Source of the DNA: Cyanophora paradoxa CCMP329
Lineage: Eukaryota; Plantae; Glaucophyta
Direction of reading: 5' to 3'
Assembly (NCBI GenBank): GCA_004431415.1
Contig: QPMI01000420.1
Span: 124,001 to 188,000 of the forward strand
DNA: 64,000 nucleotides
Part shown: one piece after another, positions 40,501-61,933 of the stretch
Numbering within the stretch: the first letter of the stretch is position 1
How the letters are laid out: each line of letters opens with the position of its first letter
Notes under the pieces: model-generated
Seen by the model: only the letters and a program-made list of their open reading frames with translations
The model's database searches: none
What the model was told of the DNA's origin: nothing
Translations under genes and position numbers: made by a program

Positions 40501-43500
40501 GCGGCGAGCGTGCACGTCGCCGCGCTCTTCGCCCGCGTGGCGGCGCTGCTGGGCGCGCTGCCGGCCGGCGCCTCGCCCTACCATGCCCTCTTCGCGGACC
40601 CAGCAGGGGCGCTGCGGGAGCAGCTCCTGCCGGGGGTCCTCGCCTGCCCAACCCTCGTCACCTTCTTCGAGTTGAAGCAGCAGAAGAGCGGCGAGGGGGA
40701 GATCCGCCACTGGCGCGTCTACCGCCACGCCGCCTGCGGATTCGAGTGCGCCCTTTTGGTTCCTTTGGGTTCACGCGGCAGCGCGCGCCGAACGCTGACT
40801 CGGTGGAGCACAGATACACCGTGGACGGGTGCGGCCAGAACGTCACGCCGGATAAGTGCCCGCGGTGCCCCGGGGCGGACATCGGCGGGACTGACCACAA
40901 GACGGCCCCCGGCAACATCGACGTGACGGCCGAGCGCCTGCGGCCTCTGCCCGGCCTGCACGCCGAGAATCCCGCCTTCCTCCGCTGCAGCGAGTACGCG
41001 GACCGCGGCCTCAACGCCACGACCTTCCGCGCCCTGCACGCCATCGCGTACCTGGCGGCCGCCGCCGCCGCCGAGTCGGGCCGCCTCTCGGAGGAGGACG
41101 GGCGGGGCTGCTTCCACGCCGGCGACGCGGCGAACTGCCTTCGCGTCGTGGAGGTCGACCTCGAGGTGCTCGCCGCGGCGCTGGGCGTGGGCCTGGAGGA
41201 GGCCTGCCTCGTGCTCCACGCCGCCCTCCGCGCCTTCGCCGGGGACCTCTTCGCCGGCCGCGCCGCCTTCGCCGCCGGCGCGGTCGTCGCCGCGGCCGGC
41301 GCGGCGCGGCGGATGCGGAGGAGCGGCGCCGCCGCTTCGAGGCGGAGTTCGAGGCGAGGTACCTGGCGCCGGCGCTGGCGGGGGCGCCGCCGCCGCCGCC
41401 GCGCGCCTCGTCGCCGAGTGCCGCCCGCCGCCGTGCGACGCCTCCGCCCGCTTCGAGGCGGCCGTCCTCTGCCAGTGGGACGCGGCGGCCCCGCGGCCCC
41501 TCGCCCGCCTGCTCGACCCCATCGCCTTCGCCAGCGCCGCCGCCCTCCGCGCCCACTTCCTCGCGGACTCGGTCAACGCCGAGCGGCACCCGGCGCTCGC
41601 GCTCCTCCTGAGGCACGAGGAGGACCTCCGGCGGGCGCGGGCGCTCCTGCCCGTCGTCGAGTTCGCGCGGCTCGTCCAGCGGCGCCTGGAGGGCCGCCTG
41701 CGCCGCGCCGAGGCGCAGCAGCTCACCGTGCGCGAGTTCCTCGAGCGCGTCGGCGAGCCCGAGGCGGCGCGGGCCCTCTTCGAGCGCTGCCGGGCGGCCC
41801 TCCGTCTGCTCGCGGCGGACCACGCGGCGCGCCCCATCCGCGTCGGCTGCCGCGAGCTGAACCTGAGCGGCGTCGAGGCGATCGAGACCGAGTCCAAGGT
41901 CGCCTTCTTTGTCGCCGAGCGCGCCGAGGGCGCCGACGCCACCGAGGCGGGGTGCGCGGCGAGCATCCATCCTACCGCGCCCAGAGCCTCAGCTGACGGC
42001 CGCGCCGCCGCAGGTCGGTCGTGTGCGCCGTGCTCGACATCGTCGCCCAGGCGCACAACCGCGCGCTCTCCGAGGCGCGGGCCCTCGCGGAGAGCTGCCC
42101 CGCGCTGGCCTTCCTGCTGCCGGCCCCGGCGGGCGCGCTGCTGGCGCAGGAGGCGGCCGCCGGGGACCTCTGCGCGCCCGAGGCCAGCGACGCGCTCGTG
42201 CAGGCGCACTCCACGCCGCTCGTGTCGCTCGAGGGCGCCGGCCGCTCCGCCCTCGCCTACCAGCTCGGCTCCCTCGAGGCCGACCTCGCCCAGGTGCCCG
42301 CGCCGCCGCCCGCCCCGCCCCGCCCCGCGCGCTCACGGGCCGCAGGCCGCGTTCGCGGGCGGCTGCCCATCCGCACGGACCCCTTCGAGCCGGGCCGGGC
42401 GCTCCTCGTCCCCTTCTCGCACCACCTCGAGCTCGCGCCGGAGCGGCTGCGCATCCCCCTCGAGGTCGGCGCCCGCGTCGAGCAGGAGCGCATCCAGCCG
42501 GCCATCGCCCGCGCCATCAAGGTGCCCCGCCCGCCCGCCCCGCGCCCCGGCCCGCGGCAGCCAACCGCGTCCGCCGCTTGCGAGCGCAGGCCTCGATCAG
42601 GGTGATCACGCCCACCCGCCCCGCGCGCCCGCGCCCCGCCGCAGCCAACCGCGACCGCCGCGGCCGCTCGCGGGCGCAGGCCTCGGGCGCCCTGCGCGAG
42701 CACTTGGACCAGCTCCTGCCCTCTCTCAACGTCGTCCTGGCGACGGTCCGCCCGGCCCCCGCCCGGCCCCCCGCGCGCCCGCTCTCTCCTCGGTTCGATT
42801 TGCTTCGCGCAGCTGATCCGGGCGTCGCGGTGGCCGGAGCACGAGCGCCTCTCGGACTTTGCGCGGCACTTCGACGCGCCCTCGACGGAGGCGTGGCTCC
42901 TGCGGCACGACGTGCTCCGCCCGCTCTGCCTCAAGCACGCCTGCGACCTCTACGACGTCGTCGAGTCCGTCCACACCGACGTGCGCCCCCGATTCCCGAA
43001 TTTCAGCGGCGCGCGCGCCGTTTACGCCCGCGCAGGTCGTGGTCGACATCCTGCGCGACGATCGCGCATTCTGCGAGGAGCTCCCGCCCGACGCCCGCGA
43101 GCTGATCCGCGCGGGCCTGGAGGGGCGCGCGGTGCCCCTGGGGCGGCTGGCGCTGGCGGCGGCGCGCCTCCTGTCGCGCGTCCTGCGGGACACGCGCGAG
43201 GGGCAGGCGCGCCTCGGGCTCCGCGTGCAGCTGACCCGCGAGGAGCTCTGGGTGACGCCCCGCGAGGGGTCGGCCCCGGGCGAGGAGGAGCTCGCGCGGG
43301 TCGTGCACGGCGGCCTGACCCTCGCGCACGCCCGCGCCCTCCACCTCTTCCTCCAGGGCCTCCTCGCCGTGCGCGCCTTTCAGCTTCCCGCAGGCCAAGC
43401 CGGCCGGCCCGGGCCCCTGTCGCTGACTGGGGTGAGCAGGACGTCGACGGAGGTGCTGGCCACGGGCCCGGGGGCCAGGGACCCCCACCCGACGGGTACC

Positions 43501-43583
43501 GCACGGCGGCGGATCGGCTCAAGCTTTCGCGCCCGACCGCCCCCGCCGTGGCCGAGCGCCCGGGCGCCCGGCGCTTCGAGTGA
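25543..43583 (+). CDS. RNF213/mysterin-like giant AAA+ ATPase / RZ-finger E3 ligase; many introns and several apparent frameshifts
   Basis: RNF213-family motifs appear in order: VTSERAGLGKT; YVLTADNMLKMILIWTRVDAGVPVVVSGDTGCGKTSL; VLFLDEINT...FVAACNPYKK; LVYRVHPLP; VSLRDVSRC; FNEALRENVFMLLVCI...VGKPGSSKSL; YQGSPQSTSEG; VVMDEIGLADTSPHNPLKVLH; FVGISNY.IDASK; NFFGLRDVYSLVK; VRRNFGG; GSSFPGD; YGSLYDILNGNY; FLNRFEK; then an RZ finger and C-terminal domain. Stop TGA at 43581-43583; start codon less certain. Confidence 0.92.
27085..27360 (+). other. CBM20-type carbohydrate-binding module of the RNF213-like protein
   Basis: LFVLGSTPELGQWD...MDP....HVW...VPIPRGEAVRYKYV......AWEAGEDR fits the CBM20 consensus (V.GS...LG.W, YKY, WE.G.NR). 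Confidence 0.85.
40712..40918 (+). other. RZ finger of the RNF213-like protein, split by intron 40746-40813
   Basis: Spliced: WRVYRHAACGFEYTVDGCGQNVTPDKCPRCPGADIGGTDHKTAPGN, compared with the RZ pattern C-x3-H-x6-CG-x7-C-x2-C-x3-IGG-x2-H. Confidence 0.85.
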
Positions 43584-44131
43584 CGTGCATGCGCATTCCA
43601 TCGTGATCCGCGGTATATCACTAGGTCGCACGTGTTACGGTAGGCCTGATCGTGAATCAACAAGAGCACCATGTATACAAATTTGCAAGTACTTTAAGAT
43701 CCCTGAGCTCGAGAATGTCAAGATTATGAATGTCTTTAAAAATTATGCCCCCTGGGCAGCCCCCTGTGGCCGGTAATTCACCAAAAAAAAAGAGAATGTC
43801 AAGATTAATGCATATGCCGACAACCGATGTCCCATGCATGTGAGAACGTGCCTACAAGCGAGTCCCTGCGGAGCAGGAGTGGCCTTGGGTCTTGGGGCAT
43901 CAAGGCGTGAGGGTGGCGCTCTTTGTTTTTAAACGGGGGCCCGCAACGTTAACGTGCATTTATATGCATGCGCATCGTTTCAACGGTTAACGTGCATACC
44001 CATACGCGAAAAAATACAAGCGTATATGTACAGCTATCGATATCGCAGCTATACATCGCGATCTATACATATATGATCGATGAAAAACGAAATCAAATTC
44101 AAAATCGAAATCCGATGATCTATAGCTATAG

Positions 44132-46626
44132 CTAGGATGTCGACTCAGTACCAATGTTCGATTTTGAAGCCAAATTAGCGAGCTGTGCAGCATACGCCCT
44201 CTGAACACAAGCCTTGAAATGTGCAGAAATTCTAACCTTATGAGCAATCTTGCCCTGATACATCAGAAGAAAGGACTGAAGGGTGAGGCAGAAAAGAGAA
44301 GGAGGCGATGTTCTATAGCTATTTGGTGGTACCTGTGCTGACGCATATATATGCTGCCTTGCAATTAAGCTTAAGATTGCTATACCTTGTTGCACGGGGC
44401 GACTTCCACAGGCGTGTCTTTTGCTTCATTTCTAGATCGATATCTCTCTCTCGTGGGACTGGTGCTGGAAGCAAAGGGGATTGCCTCAGAAAAAAGTGCT
44501 CATGGAATAAACCGTGGCTGCAATTCCACAGTCCTGTGCGGCCGCCATCGCAGCATTGTCTGTAAAATTAAACGTATTCTGTTAGCTCGAGCTCTGGAAT
44601 ATATATAGAGATCGAGCGAATTTGAAGAGCACCGGAAATAACTCGGTTTGTCATCTTGGTGCCACTCAAAACATATATTCGGAGAATTGTAAATGTCGTT
44701 TAGTTTCTTGAAACGATTCTCAGTGATATCCAAAAGCTTCCACGCAGTGCTGATTCTAGACTCACGTTTGCTAACCTCTCGTTGGACAAAAGATGGAGCG
44801 CGAGGTTCACCGGATCCGGATCCGGAGCGCATGAATTGCTTGTAATGAATGCACCGGTACAGAGGTCGAAAACGCTCAAGCGCATGATCATGATCAGGGA
44901 GTTCTTGGAACGGTTTGTGTGCACGAAGATATGCTATATCCGCGTCAACACCAGTTTTCACAAGCGATATCATCTGCGCCAAGGACGAAACCGATCGTTA
45001 ATGTAAAAGCAATGGAGTATATAAATTATCATTAAGCTTTTAATTTTTGTACACCTCAGCTTTCAAGGCATCTTTCGTCTCTTGATCCAGTTTCGAGTGT
45101 GCATATAGAACGGCCAGCGAAAGACACTTGCTAAAGAATACTCGTTTCTCTAAAATGTCTTGGATTCCATACACTGAACGGCTCTCATAGTGCTTGGTCA
45201 AGTAACGGGGGCCATTAGCGCAAATTTTTGCGGCTTGTTGCTTGATTGCATCTATGTGTTGCGGAGACAAACGTATAGTAAATTGAGGCTTCGATCCGCT
45301 GTACTCTCTTAAAAGAAGCCACTTTGTGACGGGATCAAGCTCGGAGGTCTTGAATTCATTGCCCTGCAATGCACGTTAATAATGCAATGTAGCGAGTGCA
45401 ATGGTTAAGCTTGTTACAATTGGAGTTCACACCACTAGTACTTTAAGTTCTTGTTCGGCTTCTTCAGCGAGCTGCCGAAGAGCAGCGCTTTTCTGGTCAC
45501 ATCCCGTATAGATTCGAGCCACTTCAAGTAGTCCAGTTGTCATCGTGACTGCAATACTGACTGTTTCGCTTTGCGTCAAGTACATGGTCAGCTTAAACAC
45601 GTGAAAATGAGCTCGAGAACGATTTCAACTGCGAACCTGCACTTCAGCTTTAGCTTGAATTCAGCTGAAGAGCTAGTGTCCTCTGTGTGCACGTCGGCCG
45701 AGTGACGCCGTTTCTTCATCTGGGTACTGGCCATGGCCATGGTATAGAGCTTTAGGCGGGCACAGCGCCCGGCGGCCATGTCGGGCTGCAGCGCTGCAGC
45801 ACCTCTCAGAATGTCCATCGATATCCTGATCGATATCATGATCTCGATCTGGTTCTCCGGGGGCAAGTGCAGCTGCAGGTGCAGCTAGGGCTGGATCTGG
45901 CCATGGCTGCGCGAAAACCAATCTTAATTATATAAGTGAGCAAAATATATAAGGACGATATGCAGATAAAAATATATATAACGCGCTAATACTGCAGCTG
46001 CAGCTGCGTTATACGAAGGTCGAAAGCACACCTGCACGTGCACAGCTGCAGCTAGCGCTGCAGGCCCGGGGGACGTCGACGTGCACACTGGTACCGAATT
46101 CGAACTGGATCCGCGGCCGAAGCTGAGATAATCAATGTCTGCAATCACGCGCGAGCACAAGCGTTAGCAGAACAGACTGTTAACGTTACAATTGCATTGG
46201 AGGTAGCGCGTGCGTTGTACCTGCACATGCTTCGGATCCGAATTCGAACCCAGATTGAGATCTAGAGGTGCTGCAATGCTCAAGCTCGAGCTCTTGATCA
46301 CGATCACGACCATGATCATGCATATGATCATGATCATGATCATGATCATGATCGACGCAGCTGACGTCGACTCCGGATCCAGCTCTGAGCTGCTCTAGAT
46401 TAAGATCTATCGGAGCTGCAGCTGATCGCACGTGCACACTGCTGCTGATCTCAAGGTGAACATCCCGAACATGGCGATATAAGTGGCATCGTTTACGCGC
46501 ATGGTGTCCGCAAACACTGCAGCTAAAATGCTGCGGCGGACCGTGGTTGCAAGTGGGCGGGCACTGGATGATTTCTCTTTCGACGCTAGATGGGACAGCT
46601 GCCTGGGCTGGGCGTCCTCGAGGCAT
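44132..46626 (-). CDS. Putative multi-exon protein with AT-hook-like start, C2H2 zinc finger, His/Asp repeat and unknown C-terminal domain
   Basis: MPRGRP...FSCSVCGHHARKRCHLYRHVRDVH...DHDHDHDHMHDH. Downstream exons (GNEFKTSELDPVTKWLLL; MISLVKTGVDADIAYLRAHKPF; RQCCDGGRTGLWNCSHG) join through GT-AG introns to TAG at 44132. The link across 45.6-45.9 kb is uncertain. Confidence 0.55.
46288..46352. repeat. (ATGATC)n-type hexanucleotide microsatellite encoding the His/Asp run
   Basis: catgatcatgcatatgatcatgatcatgatcatgatcatgatc. Confidence 0.8.
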
Positions 46627-52088: not shown

Positions 52089-55000
52089 CTAGACCTTGTT
52101 GAAGATTTCGGCGTGGTAGATCTGCAGGCCCGTCTTGTAGAAGAAGCTGAGGAAGGGCAGCGTCGGCCACGAGGCGGGCGGCTTGATCTCCCACCCGCAC
52201 GCCACCAGCAGCCGCAGCACCACTGCGGCGAAACGCTTCTTAGGGGACGCCGACAGCGAACTATAGCTAATTGCAAGCGCATCAAAAGTGAAGCGGCCAT
52301 TTTGCTGATCACCTTTCACAACGTCCTGGTTGAAAGCCTGCTCGTCGACGTAGGCGCCGGCGGTCTCCGCGATCGCGACCTCGGCCGCCGGCTGCGGCCG
52401 TGGCTTGTCGTTGCCGCCGGAGCGCTTGTGCACTCCAAGGCACTCGAAGGGGACCTGGCGTCGGGTTGGCCTTCGTCGTCAGATTCGTAGACGCGGGCGG
52501 GCGCGCGCGCGCACCAGCCGATTGCTGATTCGGCGCTTGCGGATCTTGTCCGGGCCGTAGAGGAACCCTGCTCCAGAATCAAACATGACGAAAAAGATGC
52601 GCCAGCAATAAACTAACTGCTGGACTGCGAAAACCACATCGAATTCAAGTGCGGACCGGCACGCTTCTTCTTGGAGGCCCAGCTCTCGTGCGCGTTGCTG
52701 GCCAGCAGCTGCACGAGCTCGCTGACCACCTCTTTGGCCGCGGTCGCGGCCTCCGTGCTCTTGTTGGACTCGATCTCCTCTTTGAACACGGCCTTGTTCA
52801 CCTTCAGAAGGAGGTAGTTCTGCGGGGAGGAGCAAGTTATCAAGGCGCACAAAAGCTGCGGGATTCGCAGACAGCGGAGGGCAGAGCGGACCGGGGGCAG
52901 GCACGGCTTTTCGGCGACGTACTTCTTCCATGACGGATCCTCTTTGAGGGCCAGCTTGGGGCACTCGTACAGCGGGAAAGCCTGCTGGCTGGCGCCCGTC
53001 CATTTGAGCAGGTCCGGCATGCCCGGCCAGCCGTTGATCTCGACCGAAGACTTGGGCGGGCGGAACGTGTACCCGCAGTACATGGCCGCGTACAAGATCT
53101 GCCGTACGCGTCCAGCGCACGTCAAGCTTAAGGAGGTCCGCGTGTGGCGTCCGGCGACTCTGGGCGCTGCGCACCTCCAGGGCTTCCTGGATGTCCTCCT
53201 CCTTCTTCTTGCGAATCGCAGCGCCCAGCTTCAGTTTCTCGCTGCCCGGTGCCTTGTCCTCGACATAAGTCTGCCACTCGCGCCCTCAGGAGAACGGACA
53301 GCAGTCGAACGCAGCGCACGAATTCACCGTCATGAAGCTGGAGATCTTGCGCCCGTCGCCCTCCTCGCTCTTGTCTTTCCCGTACTTCCAGCCGTCCTTC
53401 AGGCGCAAGCGAACCCACTGGTCGTGGTACGCGATCCCGAGGGCCTCGAGCAGAGTGACCTGGTGTCTCGTGTAGTCAACATCAACCTTACGGGCCTCCC
53501 CGATGATTGCGCTGTTGTCTCCGGCTGAAGACACGCCGTACTGGTTTGAGTTATTCACCTGACCGAGAAAAGATTGTGAGATCAACCATGTCGAAATACG
53601 CACAGAACAAACTGCGCACAACGAGAACGGGGATGCACAGCTTGGTCTTCCGCAAAGCTTCCCGAAGCTTTTGACCACTGTGCCGAACAATCAAAGCCTG
53701 GCCCATCTAGAAAACAATCGCTGCGTGCGAGCAAAGCAATCTCACTTCTTCTTGGCTATATCAGATGTGTCATAGGGACGCGGAATCCAAATTGTATTCT
53801 TCTCCTCATCCTGGGAACACGTGCAGTGATGTCAGAGAGTAAGGTCAGAAAACACTAGCTCTTCGGACGGCAGTTCATTAGAGTTGTAAGAGTTCATTAG
53901 CGGACGGCAGCTTCTGTACTTAACGCACCATGTCAATCTTGACGAAGCATTGGGGGGGCAGCGTGGACAAGAAGCGTAGCGTCTGATCGTGACCACGACT
54001 CGCGGTCAGGCAGTTCGAGTTCGCGTCCGCTGAGCAGCGGATGGGACTGCGACCGAACCTCGCGCTTGATGTCGATCTCGTTCGCCCCCCAGCTCTTCTG
54101 GATCGTGATGTCACGCACGATGCGAGCCACCTGAGCGCCCTGAGCGCCTGAAATTTGAAGGACTTCGCGAACTTTCGGACCTCGTCAAAGCGGAGCGAGT
54201 CGCGGATGACGAGCGACTGGGGGTCCGCCTCGTCGCCTCCGGCAGAGGGGGAGGAGCTGAGGATCGTGAGGTACAGATCCTGAACCCGACGATCGAACTG
54301 CGGTTCCGGAACGGCAATTGCAAGTGAGTGCACATGCGTTGAGAAGAAAATTAGAAAATGCAATCGTTTTAATGTTACAATACAAAGTCGGATAAAGCAC
54401 AAACACGACGCTGGTACCTCATTCACAGCGATCGTCAGATGCTCGTAAAAGGTCGGCTTGAGACCGGCGCGGCCGAGAATCGCGTTTTCCCCCTGCTCGA
54501 GCTCGCATTCAGTACTGATCGTACCAGGAGTCTTGAAACTGCAGGCAACGAACCCCAACGAGGCGGATCGCCCTGCGGCGGCCGACCACGCCGCCTTCGC
54601 CATCGCCGTCGAGGCTGTCGGGCCCCGCCTCTTTCACCTTGGGCTCCAGGGTCTTCAGCTTGTCGACGAGGTCCACCACGCACTTCGTCGCCTCCCCGAT
54701 GGTCTGGCGCAGAGCTCGCGAGCATGAGGGCCCTAAATATGAGGAGAGAGGGCGCGAGGATAGCGAATCTCACAGCGCGGTAAAGGGCGTCGACGAGGAC
54801 GGCATCCTCGACAAGATGCTGGAAGGTGTTCTCCTCTTTCTCCCCGCACTTGAGTAGATGCTCCTGCACGAAATAAAAGAGCTTAGATCAATGCGCAAGA
54901 ATTGCGTCTACAAAGAAAAGTTGAGCAAAAAAGCTCGGCTCGCCGTTTTGTTCTCCTTCGCGAATTCCCGCAGTGCTTCAATGATCTGTTGATTCACGGC

Positions 55001-57441
55001 TGACAGTCAATCCCGGTCTGGAAGCCTCGAAGCGTCCCAGCAGAGAACGCACGGAAAGCATGTCGTCAAGGGCGAACGTGCGCCGAACGAAGCGCGCGGG
55101 CGTGTAGACCTTGTACGCCCCCCGGTCGTCCAGGAGCTTGCGCAGCTCGTAGTTCCTCCGGCTGATGGACATCAGCGCCTCTTCCAGCTGCGCTCGATGA
55201 TAAGACGCGCATTCGAAGCTTGTATGGCATTTCAGAGAGGGCCAAAGGGCACCTCCACATCCTCGACCATCTGCTTTGGGACCTTCATTTCGAAGGCTTC
55301 GAACGCATAGCGGATGCGGTTGCCGAGCACGACGTTCGGGCCGCGGAGGTAGAAATAGAGGCGGAGTTTCGCGGCGGCCCTGCGCGTTGCCAATTTTGAG
55401 TGATTAGCACCAGAAGCGAAGGTACCGGAGAAGCATATGCATACCAGAAGGGTATGGTGAGACTATCGCCATCGTGGATGGAGAACGTGTGTGCGCTCGT
55501 TTCGAAGTGAAGGTGGCGTTTCTTCGGCGTCTCATGATCGGGTTTTTTCGCAACGCATCCAAGGCACTCGAAAAGCCCCTTGCACTTCGTCGCCACCCAC
55601 CGGAAGGGCGACATCAGCCAGCCAAACGACAGGACCGTTATCGCTGCGGATTGCATCGTGTAGTCTTTATCCATCGGCGCCAGATCAATGTACTTGTTCG
55701 TCATCTGCCGCTCTGCGTGAGCCAGAATCTCACCCATCCGTGATTGCGATTGCGTTCCCACGCACGGAGTAGACGACAAAGAATTGCTTTCTGTCGGCCG
55801 AGACGCCGCGCGCGTTCGAGCTGTGGCCGAAGGCGTCTTCCTCTTCGCCGTCGAGGGCGCCTTGCTCGTGATGCAGTTGAAGATAAAGCCCGTTCTTTGC
55901 ACAGCGTCAAATACTCGGCGATTACAGTTTTGAGTAACGGAGCTCATATATACCCGCATGACATCCATCATGAAGCGCGCCTCAGCATCTTCCAGATCAG
56001 TCCTGTCGCGATGTTAAGATGTCGAAGCGCTGATTTACCAAATCAGGAGCACAATATAGACGCACACGAGCTCTGCATGCGGCTTTGTCGACTCGTAATA
56101 ATCGACTCCTAGTTTCGACTCGTCGGCGAGAATCTCCTTGACCAGCGACCACTTGGCTCCTTTAAAGTGCTTTTCGTCCTCCTTTGTCCTCTTCTTCTTC
56201 TCAAGTTTCACTTGCGATTGAGCGAGCTCGAGCGCGCGGCGCGCTCGCGCGTCGCTCGAGAGCTTGCTGTATTCCTCCGATAGCCAGATCTGCATTCGAA
56301 ATTTAAATGATCATTGGGACGCGCACCCGATGTGAGACACGACGCACCCGAATACACGGCGGAGGCTTGTTTTTCTCCGAGCGAGGAGGGGTAACTAGAC
56401 ATGGTTTTGAATCTTCCGACTCTTCCTCGTTTTTGTCCTCTTTCGAATTCTTGTCTTTTTGCTCCTTCTGCTTGTCGTCTTTGCTGTCCTCCTTCCGGCG
56501 AAGAACCCTGAGCTGGAACATCGACGAGTTCAGCGCTCACAATATCACAGATATATATAAAGGGTCACCTTGAGCTCCGCCCGCGCTATTTTTGACCAGG
56601 GGCTCCTTAGGTCGTCGGGGCTCAAAATGTCCAGGAGCTCCTGCTCGCTCTTCACGGCTTCCACCCTGCCCGGAGAGGAGAGGATCACTTAATGGAACGG
56701 AATGGAGGCTAGGCAGCGGGCGGCGCACCCAGCTTCTTCATAGTACTGTCATTGATCGCGACGCAGGCAGTTAGTATATATGTAAATGTGAGCATTTATG
56801 TAAGAGGATTCAGCATCGAGCTTGCGCACTTTTCCGACGATTGCGATGAAGATGTTCTGGGCGCGAAACACTCATGTTTCATGTTTCCGAATTCGATTGA
56901 ATTCAAAGTCAATACTACGGTACTCACAACGAGGACCAGTCCCATAATGACGATGAACGAAAAGTAGAAGATCTGAGCCCAAGAATAAGCCTCAATCACG
57001 ACGTTCTCCTCTCCGAGGCTCTGGATCTGGAATCAGCGCACCATACCAGCCACCGGGGAGACTTCCGCCATTTCGGAGGGGTTGAAGCCTCCGCTCAGGT
57101 TGCTGCTTCGGCGGTGAGCGGCGCGAGTGAACCGAAATCGAACTCGAGAACTCGAAGCCGCTGCGTACCCGAACAGATTTGCGATGCTGCTCTTGAAAGT
57201 GCGGAACTCTGCGGGCAATCGATTGGTCAAGACGCGGCGATGCGGGCGCCGCCGCTGCCCCCAGCATGCGCTCAAACGTCTCACCTTCGATGCGGTGGCC
57301 CTACATACGCAGAGAAAGCGATTATTAGAATTCAGCTGCAGAAATCCGAGACTACATTGAAGTGAGATGCTTACGAAAATCACGAAAGCCATCGCCGCGT
57401 AACCGCCGAACAGAATGACTGCGAACGTTACCGTTAACAAA

Positions 57442-57472
<31 letters not shown>

Positions 57473-60400
57473 AGCATACGCACAGAAGATAAACACAAAG
57501 GAGGCCAGGTCAGGAACCGCCTGAGGGGGCGCGGACTCGGATTACAATATATATATGAGAGCCGCAGCGACAAACTGAAGCAGCGCGCTCGAGCTCGCCT
57601 TGGTGATCGTGTTGGTCAGGATGGCGAGCCGCGGGGTGAACTCGAGGTACTTGTAGGAGCGGATGCAGAGGATGAGGATCGAGACGCCGGCCAACTGCAG
57701 TTCCGGTTTAAGCACGAACTCCCTCGCGAGCCGCGGGCCGCGAGCGAGCCGCGGACGGCGACGCCGGCGCGCGCACCTGCTGGATCGTGCTCATGTGGTC
57801 GAGGCCCTCATCGAAGTCGTAGAAGCGGGTGGGGTCCACGCTATGGGCCAACTTTGCCGTCATGCGCTCGCAGAAGCGATCTGAACAGCAGTCAAGAATG
57901 CATAAGGCTGTAGACGTATTACGCAGTTCTAGACGGTTCAGAGCGCGGACAGTACTGAATGCCCTTGTAGCCAGCTACGAAGAGGAGCACGAGGTTCGGC
58001 ACATCCAGAAGGTTCCACTTGTCGCCTGACGAAAAGGAAATTAAAGCAGGAGGTACACAAAGCATATACACGTGAAGCGCGTTCTGCTAGATACCCGTGA
58101 TGTACTCTAGTAGGCCCTTGTCAAAAATCTCGATGATCTCGGCAACGAAGTAGCCTGCGCACGGTTTTAATTTGTCAGCTGCATAGTACACGAACAGACA
58201 GAAGCTTGAGGAATACGCACAAGCAGCCGCCAAGTAGAACACGATAGCTTGCGATTGCGGAATTCAAATATCAATGTCAAGCAGCGATGCGAGAACAAGG
58301 GCGCGCGTGCAAACACACCGATAACCACAGTCCAGCGGTCGAAAGTGTCGAGGTGGAGAGTGTCCACGCGGACGCTCGGCATGGCCAGGCCCTGCACCGT
58401 TGGATCAGAGAGCAGAGAGGAGAGAGGAGGGGTTGGGAGCAGAGGGACCGCTGTGGGGAACTCGACCATGAACGCCATCGCCACGAACGTGTCTGCGTTT
58501 AAGCAGTCAGCGCTCGGCTTGTGAGAGAAACGAAAGGGGTAGAGGGAAGAGGGGGGGGAGAGAGGGAGGAGCGGACAGGACGAAAACGGACGGAGGGCGG
58601 GAACGAATGGCGGGGAAGGGAGCTCGAGGGATGGAGATAGGGGGGGGGAGGGAGGGAGGGGGGGAGAGGGAGGGGGGGGAGGGGCGGGGGGGGGGGGGCG
58701 TGGGTGGACGTGGGTGGGCGGGCGAAGCAGGGCACGGGAAAGATGCGGGGGCGAGGAGGGGCGGGGGGAAGAAGGGGGCGGGAACTGGCCCAGTGGAAGA
58801 AAACGAAAAACGGGCGGATGGGGGGGAGGAGGAGGAGAACGGGGGTAATGGGCAGGGAGAGCCGGCCGCTCAGGGTCGGAAGGTCGCCGGGACGGGGAAA
58901 GGGCCGGGTGGTGGTGGCGGGTGGGGGGGGGCGGGGGGGGGGCGAAGGGGAGGAGGGGGGGGGGCGAAGGGAGGGGGGGTGGGGGGCGCTAAGGGGGTGC
59001 CGCACTCGTGTGGGGGTTCTGCCAGTTCGCTTCGATGACCACAGCGCGCGTGCCGGCGTCGAGCCAACCCCCCTCCTGAGCTGAATAAGAAGGGGCAGAT
59101 CCAGAGCAGCGCTGGAATGGAAATCTAAAGCTGCACTACGGCAGGCGCGCGCGAGCGCGCCTTGAGCTCGTTGCTGATGTTGAGGTTCTGCTCGTTGCTC
59201 GTGCCGGACAGGAGCGCGACGTAGCCACCGAACCCGTACGAGTTCGGGACCTGGTTCAACACTAAGCTCGGCCGCGCGCCCTAGTGGCCAATTGTGCGCT
59301 TGCAGCGGACGCACCTCGCCCGTGAGCTGGTCGCGGAGGTAGCCGGAGGATGGCTCGACCTCGCGCATGCCCGTGCGGTACCGCCACCTGCTCGGGCGCG
59401 GACAAGGCTGTCAGGCGGGACCGAAGCGAAAGCCGAGATCTAATTGATTGATTAATTGATCAACAGCGCACTCGTCGTCGTTCAGGGGGAAGGCGCTGCG
59501 GTCCTCGACCCCTGGGTTAAAGTCATTGTAGCACCTGCCCGAGCCCGGCGAACGAAGTTGTTAGGAGGAAAGGCGTCAATTTAAGGTCTCCAGACGGAGC
59601 CGCCGCACCGCCAGTCGACCATCTTCGAGTGCCCGGGGATGATCGCCTTGCAGTCGAACGGAGTGCTGCGGATCTGTCGGATTCGGACGGCGCCGACCTG
59701 CGCCGAGGCGGTCGCTGTGGTCAGCAGCGGATAGAAGTTAAAGAGAGCCAATGCTCCGACCTGCTGGCGGAACCAGCGGAAGGAGCCCTCCCTCTCGTTC
59801 GCGGGGTCCGTTAGCGGCAGTAAGACGTCCGCCAGCCATCCGTAGAGGTCGCCTGGCGGCGTATCAGCACGCGGAATAGGCATGCACGCGCAGGCGCAAT
59901 AAATTAATCACAGATCGAAGCGACGCACCAACGTCCTTGACACTTTCGAAGGCCTGAGGGAATTCGATTATAATTGGCGGAATGAAAGGGCAAGGCACGA
60001 ATCGATTGAAGAGACCCTCGGGCACCTCCTCCATGTCAAGGTGCCCGTCGACGATCAGAGACTCGTTCTGCTCGTAGTTGATCTGCGGAAAAGTATAGTC
60101 AGGCCGGAAGGGGAGGCTGGCAGGCGAAATGGAAGAGGGCTCTGGTAGCCTCGGAGGAGGCCCTGGGGGCCGATTCTAGGGCCCGGTTCGCGGCCGCCAC
60201 CAGCCTTTGGGGGAGGCGGGGGGGCGGGAGGGGGAGGGGGGGCGGGGGCCGGGGGATGAATGGGAGGGGCGGAAGAGGAGGGGCGGGGGGGGGGGGGGGA
60301 GGGGGGCGGGCGGGCGGTGGTGCGCGGAAGGATGGCCTGAGAGGCCCTGAGGGGAGGGGAGGGCCGGGCGGGGAAGAGCGAAAGAAGGGTGGGAGGGTGG

Positions 60401-61933
60401 GTAATGTAAAGTGGGAGGCATGCGAGGGGGCAGGAGTATGAGGCGAGAAAGAGAAGGAGAGAAAGAAGAGAGGTGACTGGTATTGGGACGGCGAGAAGAG
60501 GAGTGAATAGGGAGGGTGGGGGCTGGTTGGGAGGGAGGAGGGGGGGGGGGGCAAGGAGAGGGGGACTCGGGAGGAGGAGGACAGCGTTGGGGTGCGGGAA
60601 GGGGAGAGAGAGGAGTGGGAGGGGCGGCAGGGGACGGGGGGTAGCAGGAGGAGGAGAGGGTGGGTGGTTGGGGGTGTTGAGGGGGGGGGGCGCTGGGCAA
60701 AGGACGGAGGGCGGGGGAGGGGGGGGGGGGGGCAGCGAGAGGTGGAGGGGCTTGGGGTGGAGGGGGGGAGGGGGGGGAGGGGCCGGGCTGCTGGCCATGG
60801 AGCGTGGGATGGGGGGGGGGGGGGGGGCGGGGGGAGGGAGGAGGAGGCGGGATGACATGGTTAGGCCCCTGGCTGCCCAGGGTCTCGGCTCGGGTGGGAG
60901 GGAGCGGGAGGGAGCGGGAGAAGGGACGACTCGGGGTACGGGACTTCGGAGGATCCGGAGGCAAGTGAAGTGGGGCGGGGGGGAGCGCGGAGGGGGGGGG
61001 GAAGTTGCAGGGGTTTACATACCGAGACGGGGATGATGCGGACGGCCAGGAGGGCGAAGAGGCTGACGAACACGAAGTACAGAACCATACCCCTGCGCAA
61101 TGCACGCCGCGCCGTGAGCAATTGCACGGCACACACCGCACAGCCACTGCCACTGCCTGTCGCGCGTCGCGCACCGGTAGAGCTCGTACTTGTAGAGGCG
61201 CTTGCGCCACACGCGCAGGTAGATCTCCGTCGCGCGCACGTTGAGCTTGATGTCCGCGAACAGCCTGCAAAGCAAAGCACAGCGGGCGCGCGTAAGCAGC
61301 AGCGACGGTCGGGGAAGGATAGACGGACTTGCGGATGGCTCGGTTTGCGTCGCCCGCCCGCTTCTTGTGAGCCTCTTGATCCGGATCGCCGGCGGTCGCC
61401 GGCGCGGCGCTGTCGTCGTACGCGCGCTGCAGCTGCAGCTTCCGCCCGCCGAGCATGGGCTGCCGCGGGTCGTAGGCGAGCCCTTCGCCCGGCTCGGGGC
61501 TGCTGGGGCCGGCCACCGGCGCGAATCGGTTCCCGGGGCTCAGCCCGCGCGACCGCACCGCAGCTGCGTTCCCGTCCGCAGCCAGGAGCCCGCTGTAGGC
61601 GTCGTACATGCTGCCGATGTGCCCACCAGCACCTCCGGGCAGAGGCGGAGCGTCGAAAGGCGGCCCGCGAACGTACGGCTGCAGGCCACTGGCAGCCGGG
61701 CCGCCGATGCCGCCATAGGGATACGATGCGACGGTCGATGCTGGCGACGCATATGCTGGCTGGTCGGAGCGACGGGTGGGCGCGGCGGCCCGCACGAGAC
61801 CAGCCCCCGAAGCGCGGCCGCCGGTCAAAGTTGCCGCGGAAGCGATCGAGGAGCTGCTGGCGGTGGTCCCGTCGGAGGACTCCGCCTCCGTCGGCGGGGG
61901 CCCGTAGCCGTAGAGCGGGACGTGCCCCGCCAT
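52089..61933 (-). CDS. Polycystin-2 (PKD2/TRPP)-type cation channel with two C-terminal ryanodine-receptor (RyR) repeats
   Basis: S1 GMVLYFVFVSLFALLAV. TOP-domain motifs DLYGWLADVLLP, VGAVRIRQIRSTPFDC, CYNDFNPGVEDRSAF, YGFGGYV, WLDAGTRAVVIE and FMVEFP. Then KWNLLD; IRSYKYLEFTPRLAILTNTI; GYAAMAFVIFG; EFRTFKSSIANLF; S6 IFYFSFIVIMGLVL|NIFIAIV. RyR repeats WIPRPYDTSDI...LGIAYHDQWVRLRLKDGWKYG and LASNAHESWASKKK.QGFLYG...NRL|VPF...LLVACGWEI. Confidence 0.88.

Follow-up and report, generated by a model that had tools for sequence, protein, structure and literature searches.

Whether a polycystin channel that carries ryanodine receptor (RyR) repeats at its C-terminus can be a native gene of an organism other than an oomycete is the question raised by a locus of the glaucophyte Cyanophora paradoxa CCMP329. 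The only papers on proteins of this type, named PKDRR, confine them to oomycetes among all cellular organisms and propose them as oomycete-specific drug targets (Zheng, Doyle Prestwich, Harrison and Mackrill 2020, PMC7399828). The window analysed here, i.e. the whole stretch of 64,000 nucleotides at positions 124,001 to 188,000 of contig QPMI01000420.1, contains a collinear gene on the minus strand, from 61933 to 52089, with ~49 exons that add up to ~1,695 codons, according to a frame and splice reading and the mapping of a public gene model. The gene encodes, in order, a low-complexity N-terminus, the transmembrane helix S1, the TOP/polycystin domain and helices S2-S6 with the pore, from which a linker ~600 residues long leads to a pre-RyR module and the pair of RyR repeats. 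All the parts that an earlier note on this DNA had placed on one strand, namely the TRPP channel and its TOP domain, the long linker in the cytosol and the tandem RyR pair, were thus recovered. The locus is probably one nuclear gene of Cyanophora paradoxa for a PKDRR-type channel with a TOP domain, a coiled coil, the pre-RyR module and a Repeat12-type pair, and the channel is proposed to be ligand-modulated. The following paragraphs demonstrate its architecture and collinear exons, show that it is homologous to the oomycete PKDRR proteins as well as to a paralog in Cyanophora, and describe the predicted fold of its repeats, which resembles that of Repeat12.

Reading of the minus strand in three frames between 61933 and 52089 yields a chain of short open pieces bounded by GT/GC...AG sites. 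Exon 53328-53522, the core of repeat 1, was searched against a representative library of 1.84 billion proteins, by which P0001 was retrieved, the EukProt entry EP00741_Cyanophora_paradoxa_P011964 (tig00020572_g11560.t1; 1,228 residues). The 39 exons of this public automatic model match the window with 100% identity between 58478 and 52092, and its single protein already comprises S2-S6, the linker and the RyR pair; as EukProt names its host Cyanophora paradoxa, the earlier placing of the architecture outside the oomycetes holds. The 38 introns of P0001 are all 50-120 nt long, 36 of them GT-AG and two GC-AG. The latter, at 57521-57598 and 54864-54943, have the identical donor GCGAGC, and GCGCGC at ~59160, farther upstream in the gene, may be a third GC donor.

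The public model starts at a Met within the TOP domain (ATG at 58478), just past a C-rich intron of 513 nt, and is without the first ~467 codons of the gene, i.e. without S1 and most of the TOP domain; that intron, directly before the model's start, is probably the cause of the shortening. Upstream of it lie ten more exons, which were handled singly, with their lengths and phases summed, and the first exon of the model itself gains 14 nt 5' of the ATG, with an acceptor at 58492. The exonic sequence from the ATG at 61933 to 58449 comprises 1,431 nt, a number divisible by three, and the frame of each exon fits the running phase. The putative first exon (61329-61933), recognized from the list of open reading frames (ORFs), the splice reading, its frame-keeping length and a G+C content at third codon positions (GC3) of 0.82, has its candidate start at ATG 61933, encodes about 200 low-complexity residues rich in G, P, A, S and Y, and has a GTCCGT donor. 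It is followed by two exons (61264-61175 and 61092-61023; 61023-61264 overall) for the pre-S1 helix and S1, and by seven exons (60082-60026, 59953-59929, 59852-59609, 59534-59472, 59387-59315, 59250-59161 and 59075-59006; 59006-60082 overall) for the TOP domain. The two long introns in this part, of 940 nt (60083-61022) and 513 nt (58493-59005), were placed by splice and phase reading and are of low complexity, C-rich in the sense of the gene and G-rich on the plus strand. Both translate into spurious long proline-rich ORFs, such as that at 60055-60858. The remaining introns of the gene measure 50-120 nt each.

Evidence for the domains has been obtained from single exons as well as from the joined protein. 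Exon by exon, Pfam gave Polycystin_dom at 59584-59907 (12.4 bits), PKD_channel at 57545-57790 (21.4 bits) and RyR at both 53289-53690 (20.2 bits; repeat 1) and 52616-53230 (18.0 bits; repeat 2), every one of these matches being partial and, alone, under the gathering score because the exons are short and hold domain fragments only. On P0001, PKD_channel (PF08016) covers residues 28-249 with E 1.7e-35 (123 bits) and RyR (PF02026) is matched with E 3.9e-15 (56.3 bits), in agreement with the domains for which the earlier note had proposed a Pfam search. The Pfam matches on P0001 comprise PKD_channel, Ion_trans and RyR only, with no RyR/IP3R-type pore together with RIH and related domains, and Pfam scans of the linker pieces and the N-terminal ORF gave no match. 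In the part missing from P0001, residues 86-145 (pre-S1 and S1) and 181-228 (TOP) of the Cyanophora paralog P0018 align by tblastn to 61275-61014 and 59850-59644, respectively, and exon 59075-59006 encodes the strand pair W-L-D-A-G-T-R ... N-P-H-T typical of polycystin TOP domains. A TOP domain is therefore present between S1 and S2, as judged from the weak Pfam match on one exon, the collinear matches of P0018 and of a family profile, the motifs read and the splice and phase check of its exons.

The family profile, a hidden Markov model (HMM) of 17 members from which P0001 was left out, was run against all stop-free pieces on both strands of the interval 51.5-62.5 kb. On the minus strand 14 pieces were matched, and their order strictly follows that of the profile: S1 (profile 81-110, 61115-61023) comes first, the TOP domain (profile 169-190, 246-273 and 273-297) and repeat 1 (53456-53361) follow, and repeat 2 (profile 1082-1104, 52726-52658) is last. 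The plus strand, serving as a control, gave 3 non-collinear matches, each of 1.3 bits or less. Moreover, the channel, linker and RyR exons have GC3 values of 0.81, 0.76 and 0.84, respectively, compared with a GC content of 0.53 in the introns, and the coding signature thus continues through the linker.

The channel itself is built as in animal polycystin-2 and PKD2L1, with six helices, a TOP domain between S1 and S2 and a PKD_channel pore. Fourteen exons (56830-58492) encode the last part of the TOP domain together with S2-S6 and the pore, as assigned from the PKD_channel match, the exon map, the identity to the paralog and the pore alignment. Unlike the animal proteins, the Cyanophora gene is without an EF-hand tail and has RyR repeats in its place. 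In the filter alignment (A2), P0001 reads L-S-G-G-F-N, a stretch that lies in the pore exon 57101-57042, the paralog L-G-G-G-L-D and the oomycete proteins L-L-G-A-F-D. The acidic filter residue of TRPP channels, D643 in PKD2 and D523 in PKD2L1, is unmatched in P0001. With no acidic residue among the aligned positions of its G-G-F-N filter, this copy lends no support to the earlier note's description of the channel as Ca2+-permeable.

Beyond the pore extends a cytosolic tail of about 980 residues, composed of a coiled coil, the family-specific pre-RyR module and the tandem RyR pair. The linker exons (54298-56745; P0001 residues ~246-765), delimited by the exon map, GC3 and a BLASTP match of residues 548-706 to P0018, encode a K/E-rich stretch, a predicted coiled coil and a paralog-conserved region. 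The pre-RyR module (53929-54297; P0001 residues ~766-846), which was derived in this analysis and lies outside the published definition of PKDRR, has the form S-L-R-F-D-E ... R-F ... P-x-P-x-D and directly precedes repeat 1. Cyanophora and oomycete proteins can be aligned across it for ~90-200 residues ahead of repeat 1 (E 4.7e-6 and a probability of 86% in hhalign), with R42, D44 and E69 invariant around the S-L-R-F-D-E motif in alignment A1, and the family HMM matches it at 54303-54166. Animal RyR chains have no match to it, their similarity starting at the P-x-P-x-D strand. Because this module is shared, the kinship to oomycete PKDRR goes beyond domain composition.

Repeat 1 occupies five exons (53059-53810) and begins at the P-R-P-Y-D-T-S strand, as seen from Pfam, phmmer, alignment A1 and the family HMM (17.3 bits, E 1.4e-5). 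Four exons (52092-52819) encode repeat 2 together with the 29 residues of the C-terminal tail, as assigned from the Pfam RyR match on P0001 residues 1096-1148, the matches to Repeat12 of RyR1, RyR2 and RyR3, and the exon map; the stop codon TAG is read at 52089-52091. The boundaries given earlier for the two repeats, 53810-53060 and 52730-52185, are correct by the sequence reading and alignment A1, and so is the claim that both repeats contain insertions, which in repeat 1 measure ~55 residues (from the first strand to helix 1) and ~15 residues (helix 2-3 loop), and in repeat 2 measure 28 residues (after the L-V-P-F motif). The insertion of ~55 residues is common to both Cyanophora paralogs. 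The last intron (52223-52312) was read through in the earlier note, being 90 nt long, in frame and stop-free, and comparison with the paralog suggests that it is spliced out. Its retention, which would add 30 residues in helix 3 of repeat 2, could give rise to an alternative isoform.

When a profile of the tail was compared with Repeat12 of RyR1, RyR2 and RyR3, E was about 1e-92; P0001 alone matched RyR Repeat12 chains with E about 5e-6, and the matches to RyR chains are limited to the repeat regions. An AlphaFold2 model of P0001 residues 760-1228 (predicted TM-score, pTM, 0.64; mean predicted local distance difference test, pLDDT, 61.6) reaches a pLDDT of 80-93 in the repeat helices and falls under 50 in the insertions, and its top Foldseek matches are the crystal structures of human RyR3 Repeat12, with TM-scores by target of 0.60-0.68. 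In animal RyR, the two halves of Repeat12 close like a clamshell upon ATP or ADP bound in the cleft between them, where the adenine stacks on W881, W995 lies opposite, and R885, R896 and R1019 hold the phosphates (PMC12627627). In addition, phage RyR-domain proteins bind or cleave cyclic ADP-ribose isomers, one such enzyme doing both by means of the same His/Trp motif (PMC13232231). At the positions of RyR1 W881, W995, R885, R896 and R1019, P0001 has W, W, R, K and R in the alignment. Like animal Repeat12, the tandem pair of P0001 is predicted to form a pseudo-symmetric clamshell in which the HxxW tryptophans and three basic contacts are kept; unlike it, the pair sits on a TRP-type pore instead of an RyR/IP3R pore and bears large disordered insertions.

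RyR domains have also been met in other fusions. P0013 (894 residues) has four RyR domains followed by Ion_trans, a different arrangement with N-terminal repeats, and P0007, P0009, P0010, P0011 and P0017 (743-1,298 residues) combine TrkA_N, an NAD-binding regulator of K+ transport, with two to four RyR domains. The TrkA_N proteins are another case in which RyR repeats are tied to transport regulation and nucleotide binding.

With regard to its relatives, the gene belongs to a family of at least three Cyanophora loci of the PKD and RyR type. The paralog P0018 (tig00001537_g9306.t1; 1,341 residues) has Polycystin_dom, PKD_channel and two RyR domains, and P0002 is a fragment model of the third locus, tig00020592_g11681.t1. 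P0018 is like P0001 in its full architecture and in the long insertion of repeat 1, and the identity of the two is 43% for the channel, 27% for one part of the linker and 24% for the pre-RyR module and RyR repeats. It differs in keeping the 'HP' histidines, in having an Asp near the filter and in having no insertion in repeat 2, P0001 being the more diverged of the two. In a protein search by word index, P0001 found itself, the paralog and one fish PKD1-like protein among the matches listed, and the P0018 tail found itself and P0001 among those listed, results that have no bearing on distribution. An Atlas search returned plain PKD-channel clusters only, all scoring under 0.9, and no paper in the library searched links Cyanophora to such a channel.

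The oomycete PKDRR proteins, labelled 'RIR-CaC family' at NCBI, have the same order of parts as the Cyanophora gene, that is, TOP, PKD_channel, a long linker and two C-terminal RyR (R) domains. With the RyR region of the oomycete-type protein P0016 as query, 27 further proteins were obtained, all with PF08016 and PF02026, the named ones coming from Phytophthora, Albugo, Lagenidium, Peronospora and relatives. Cyanophora and oomycete proteins are 27-32% identical in the channel part and can also be aligned over the RyR pair, P0018 and the short-tailed oomycete subfamily having ~50% identity in repeat 2. The differences lie in the introns, of which there are ~48, all but two short, in the Cyanophora gene and none in the uninterrupted ORF of the oomycete-type gene examined (P0016); in the linker, ~600 residues compared with ~350; in the insertions in both P0001 repeats and the absence of P-x-P-x-D from repeat 2; and in the filter, G-G-F-N instead of the oomycete G-A-F-D. 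Two environmental proteins are 31-35% identical to oomycete PKDRR and also carry the pre-RyR module: P0047, with Polycystin_dom, PKD_channel and two RyR domains on an intron-poor eukaryotic contig of 30.8 kb (ENA metagenome ERZ23491423 scaffold_1462; L003:10001-12847), and P0004, on a transcript-like contig of 2.2 kb (JGI sample 3300031445; L002:8-1867). The class had earlier been called rare; it does extend beyond the published oomycete range, and its at least three Cyanophora loci and the environmental eukaryotic contigs call for a milder word.

A phylogeny with oomycete PKDRR, likewise proposed in the earlier note, was made as a quick maximum-likelihood tree, in which the two Cyanophora proteins pair with a support of 99 outside both oomycete clades and P0004 and P0047 stand beside the short-tailed oomycete clade. 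The root of this tree is one long fish PKD1-like branch, P0001 is itself a long branch, and the tree's safe reading is limited to the statement that the Cyanophora proteins are not nested inside oomycetes. Published PKDRR subfamilies are defined by length, with more than 10 residues past the last R domain in A and fewer than 10 in B (PMC7399828). The 29-residue tail makes P0001 an 'A' protein by length, yet the Cyanophora pair falls outside A and B in the tree. P0001 is a genuine PKDRR family member outside the oomycetes and the most diverged of the at least three Cyanophora loci.

It has to be considered whether the channel and the repeats belong to one gene and whether that gene is Cyanophora's own. 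The largest non-coding gap between the channel and the RyR exons in the P0001 exon map is 120 nt, the paralog has the same order of parts with a partly conserved linker, and P0016 (locus L001) holds PKD and RyR in one uninterrupted ORF. Taken with the public model, the collinearity, the short introns, the coding signature and the pre-RyR module, these observations are best explained by a single gene, with channel and RyR pair on one predicted polypeptide. Two adjacent genes fused by the gene predictor, a polycystin channel ending past the coiled coil and a separate cytosolic RyR-domain protein, would fit with the lack of detectable similarity to the paralog in P0001 residues 298-547 and with the Met codon that opens exon 55704-55444; they are nevertheless very unlikely, given that gaps of at most 120 nt across 58478-52092 leave no space for a 3' end and a promoter, that every junction keeps the frame with GT/GC-AG sites, that the GC3 signature spans the linker, that the paralog and the intron-less oomycete genes share the single-protein order, and that the pre-RyR module directly precedes repeat 1 in all members. 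More improbable still is a gene foreign to Cyanophora, present through contamination or recent transfer from an oomycete. The published family range of oomycetes only (PMC7399828) and the GC content of the locus, 54-58% under a window median of 71%, can be cited in its favour, but 48 introns, mostly short, face the uninterrupted ORF of P0016, a GC3 of 0.80 is that expected for a GC-rich genome, two further paralogous loci lie on other Cyanophora contigs, and the Cyanophora pair stands outside both oomycete subfamilies at ~25-32% identity.

Several observations weigh against the preferred reading of the locus. The His of the 'HP-LVPY' motif that contacts phosphate, and that the phage enzyme uses, is Ser in both P0001 repeats and is kept in the paralog; the P-x-P-x-D strand is missing from repeat 2; G and N take the place of the acidic filter residue of relatives; and P0001 stands on a long branch, 3.04 compared with 1.36 for the paralog. 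Furthermore, the AlphaFold2 model of the linker (pLDDT 43.5, pTM 0.24) is too poor to interpret, the introns of 940 and 513 nt are atypical for the gene, and P0001 is itself an automatic prediction, incomplete at the N-terminus. A degenerating or functionally shifted paralog, non-conducting or non-sensing, or even a unitary pseudogene with its frame still open, would agree with the long branch, with the loss of the 'HP' histidines from both repeats and of the N-terminal strand from repeat 2, with the aligned filter devoid of an acidic residue and with the two expanded low-complexity introns. Such decay is unlikely, however, as all ~49 exons are open with every junction read as frame-keeping, as exon GC3 of 0.76-0.84 against an intron GC of 0.53 argues for maintained coding, and as both HxxW motifs and the basic ligand-contact residues have been kept. 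It is possible, though doubtful, that the RyR pair is no sensor of small molecules and acts like Repeat34 of animal RyR2 as a scaffold for docking and phosphorylation, or else mediates a contact between subunits: RyR2 Repeat34 is a kinase-binding phosphorylation hotspot, PDB entries 6mm6-6mm8 are among the matches, and the large disordered insertions in and between the repeats (pLDDT under 50) could bear regulatory sites. Set against this, the best sequence and fold matches are to Repeat12 and not Repeat34, the Trp and Arg/Lys residues of the Repeat12 ligand contacts are conserved, and the RyR domains fused to TrkA_N and those of phage enzymes indicate nucleotide chemistry.

For the preferred PKDRR-type channel with a Repeat12-type pair, the following mechanism may be envisaged. 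The protein would assemble as a tetramer, as other TRPP channels do, and its two repeats would form a clamshell in which the two conserved HxxW tryptophans enclose an adenine nucleotide or a ligand of the ADP-ribose type. As the clamshell closes, the movement might be transmitted via the linker to the S6 gate, rendering the channel ligand-modulated. It can tentatively be proposed, as a conjecture for the family as a whole, that the RyR pair of PKDRR is a receptor for ATP/ADP, ADP-ribose and cyclic ADP-ribose isomers that gates the polycystin pore, and that a ligand-gated TRP channel of this kind was present in early eukaryotes, before or independently of animal RyR, and has survived in glaucophytes, oomycetes and some uncultured protists.

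The native, intron-rich gene family of a glaucophyte contradicts the oomycete-only claim for PKDRR (PMC7399828), and so do the shared pre-RyR module and the related contigs of uncultured eukaryotes. With PKDRR-type genes in a glaucophyte, in oomycetes and in uncultured eukaryotes, the fusion must be either much older than has been thought or exchanged between distant eukaryotes. Considering that RyR domains bind nucleotides and ADP-ribose compounds (PMC12627627, PMC13232231), these small TRP-type channels offer a tractable system for learning what an RyR repeat senses. The locus adds a member to the PKDRR family and a correction to the annotation, the public model being ~467 codons short.

Elsewhere in the window, an Rfam scan of its whole length gave no match, and neither did a Pfam search with the four longest minus-strand ORFs at 43500-46500. 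The latter interval forms a dip in GC content to 42-53%, the rest of the window having 65-80% GC.

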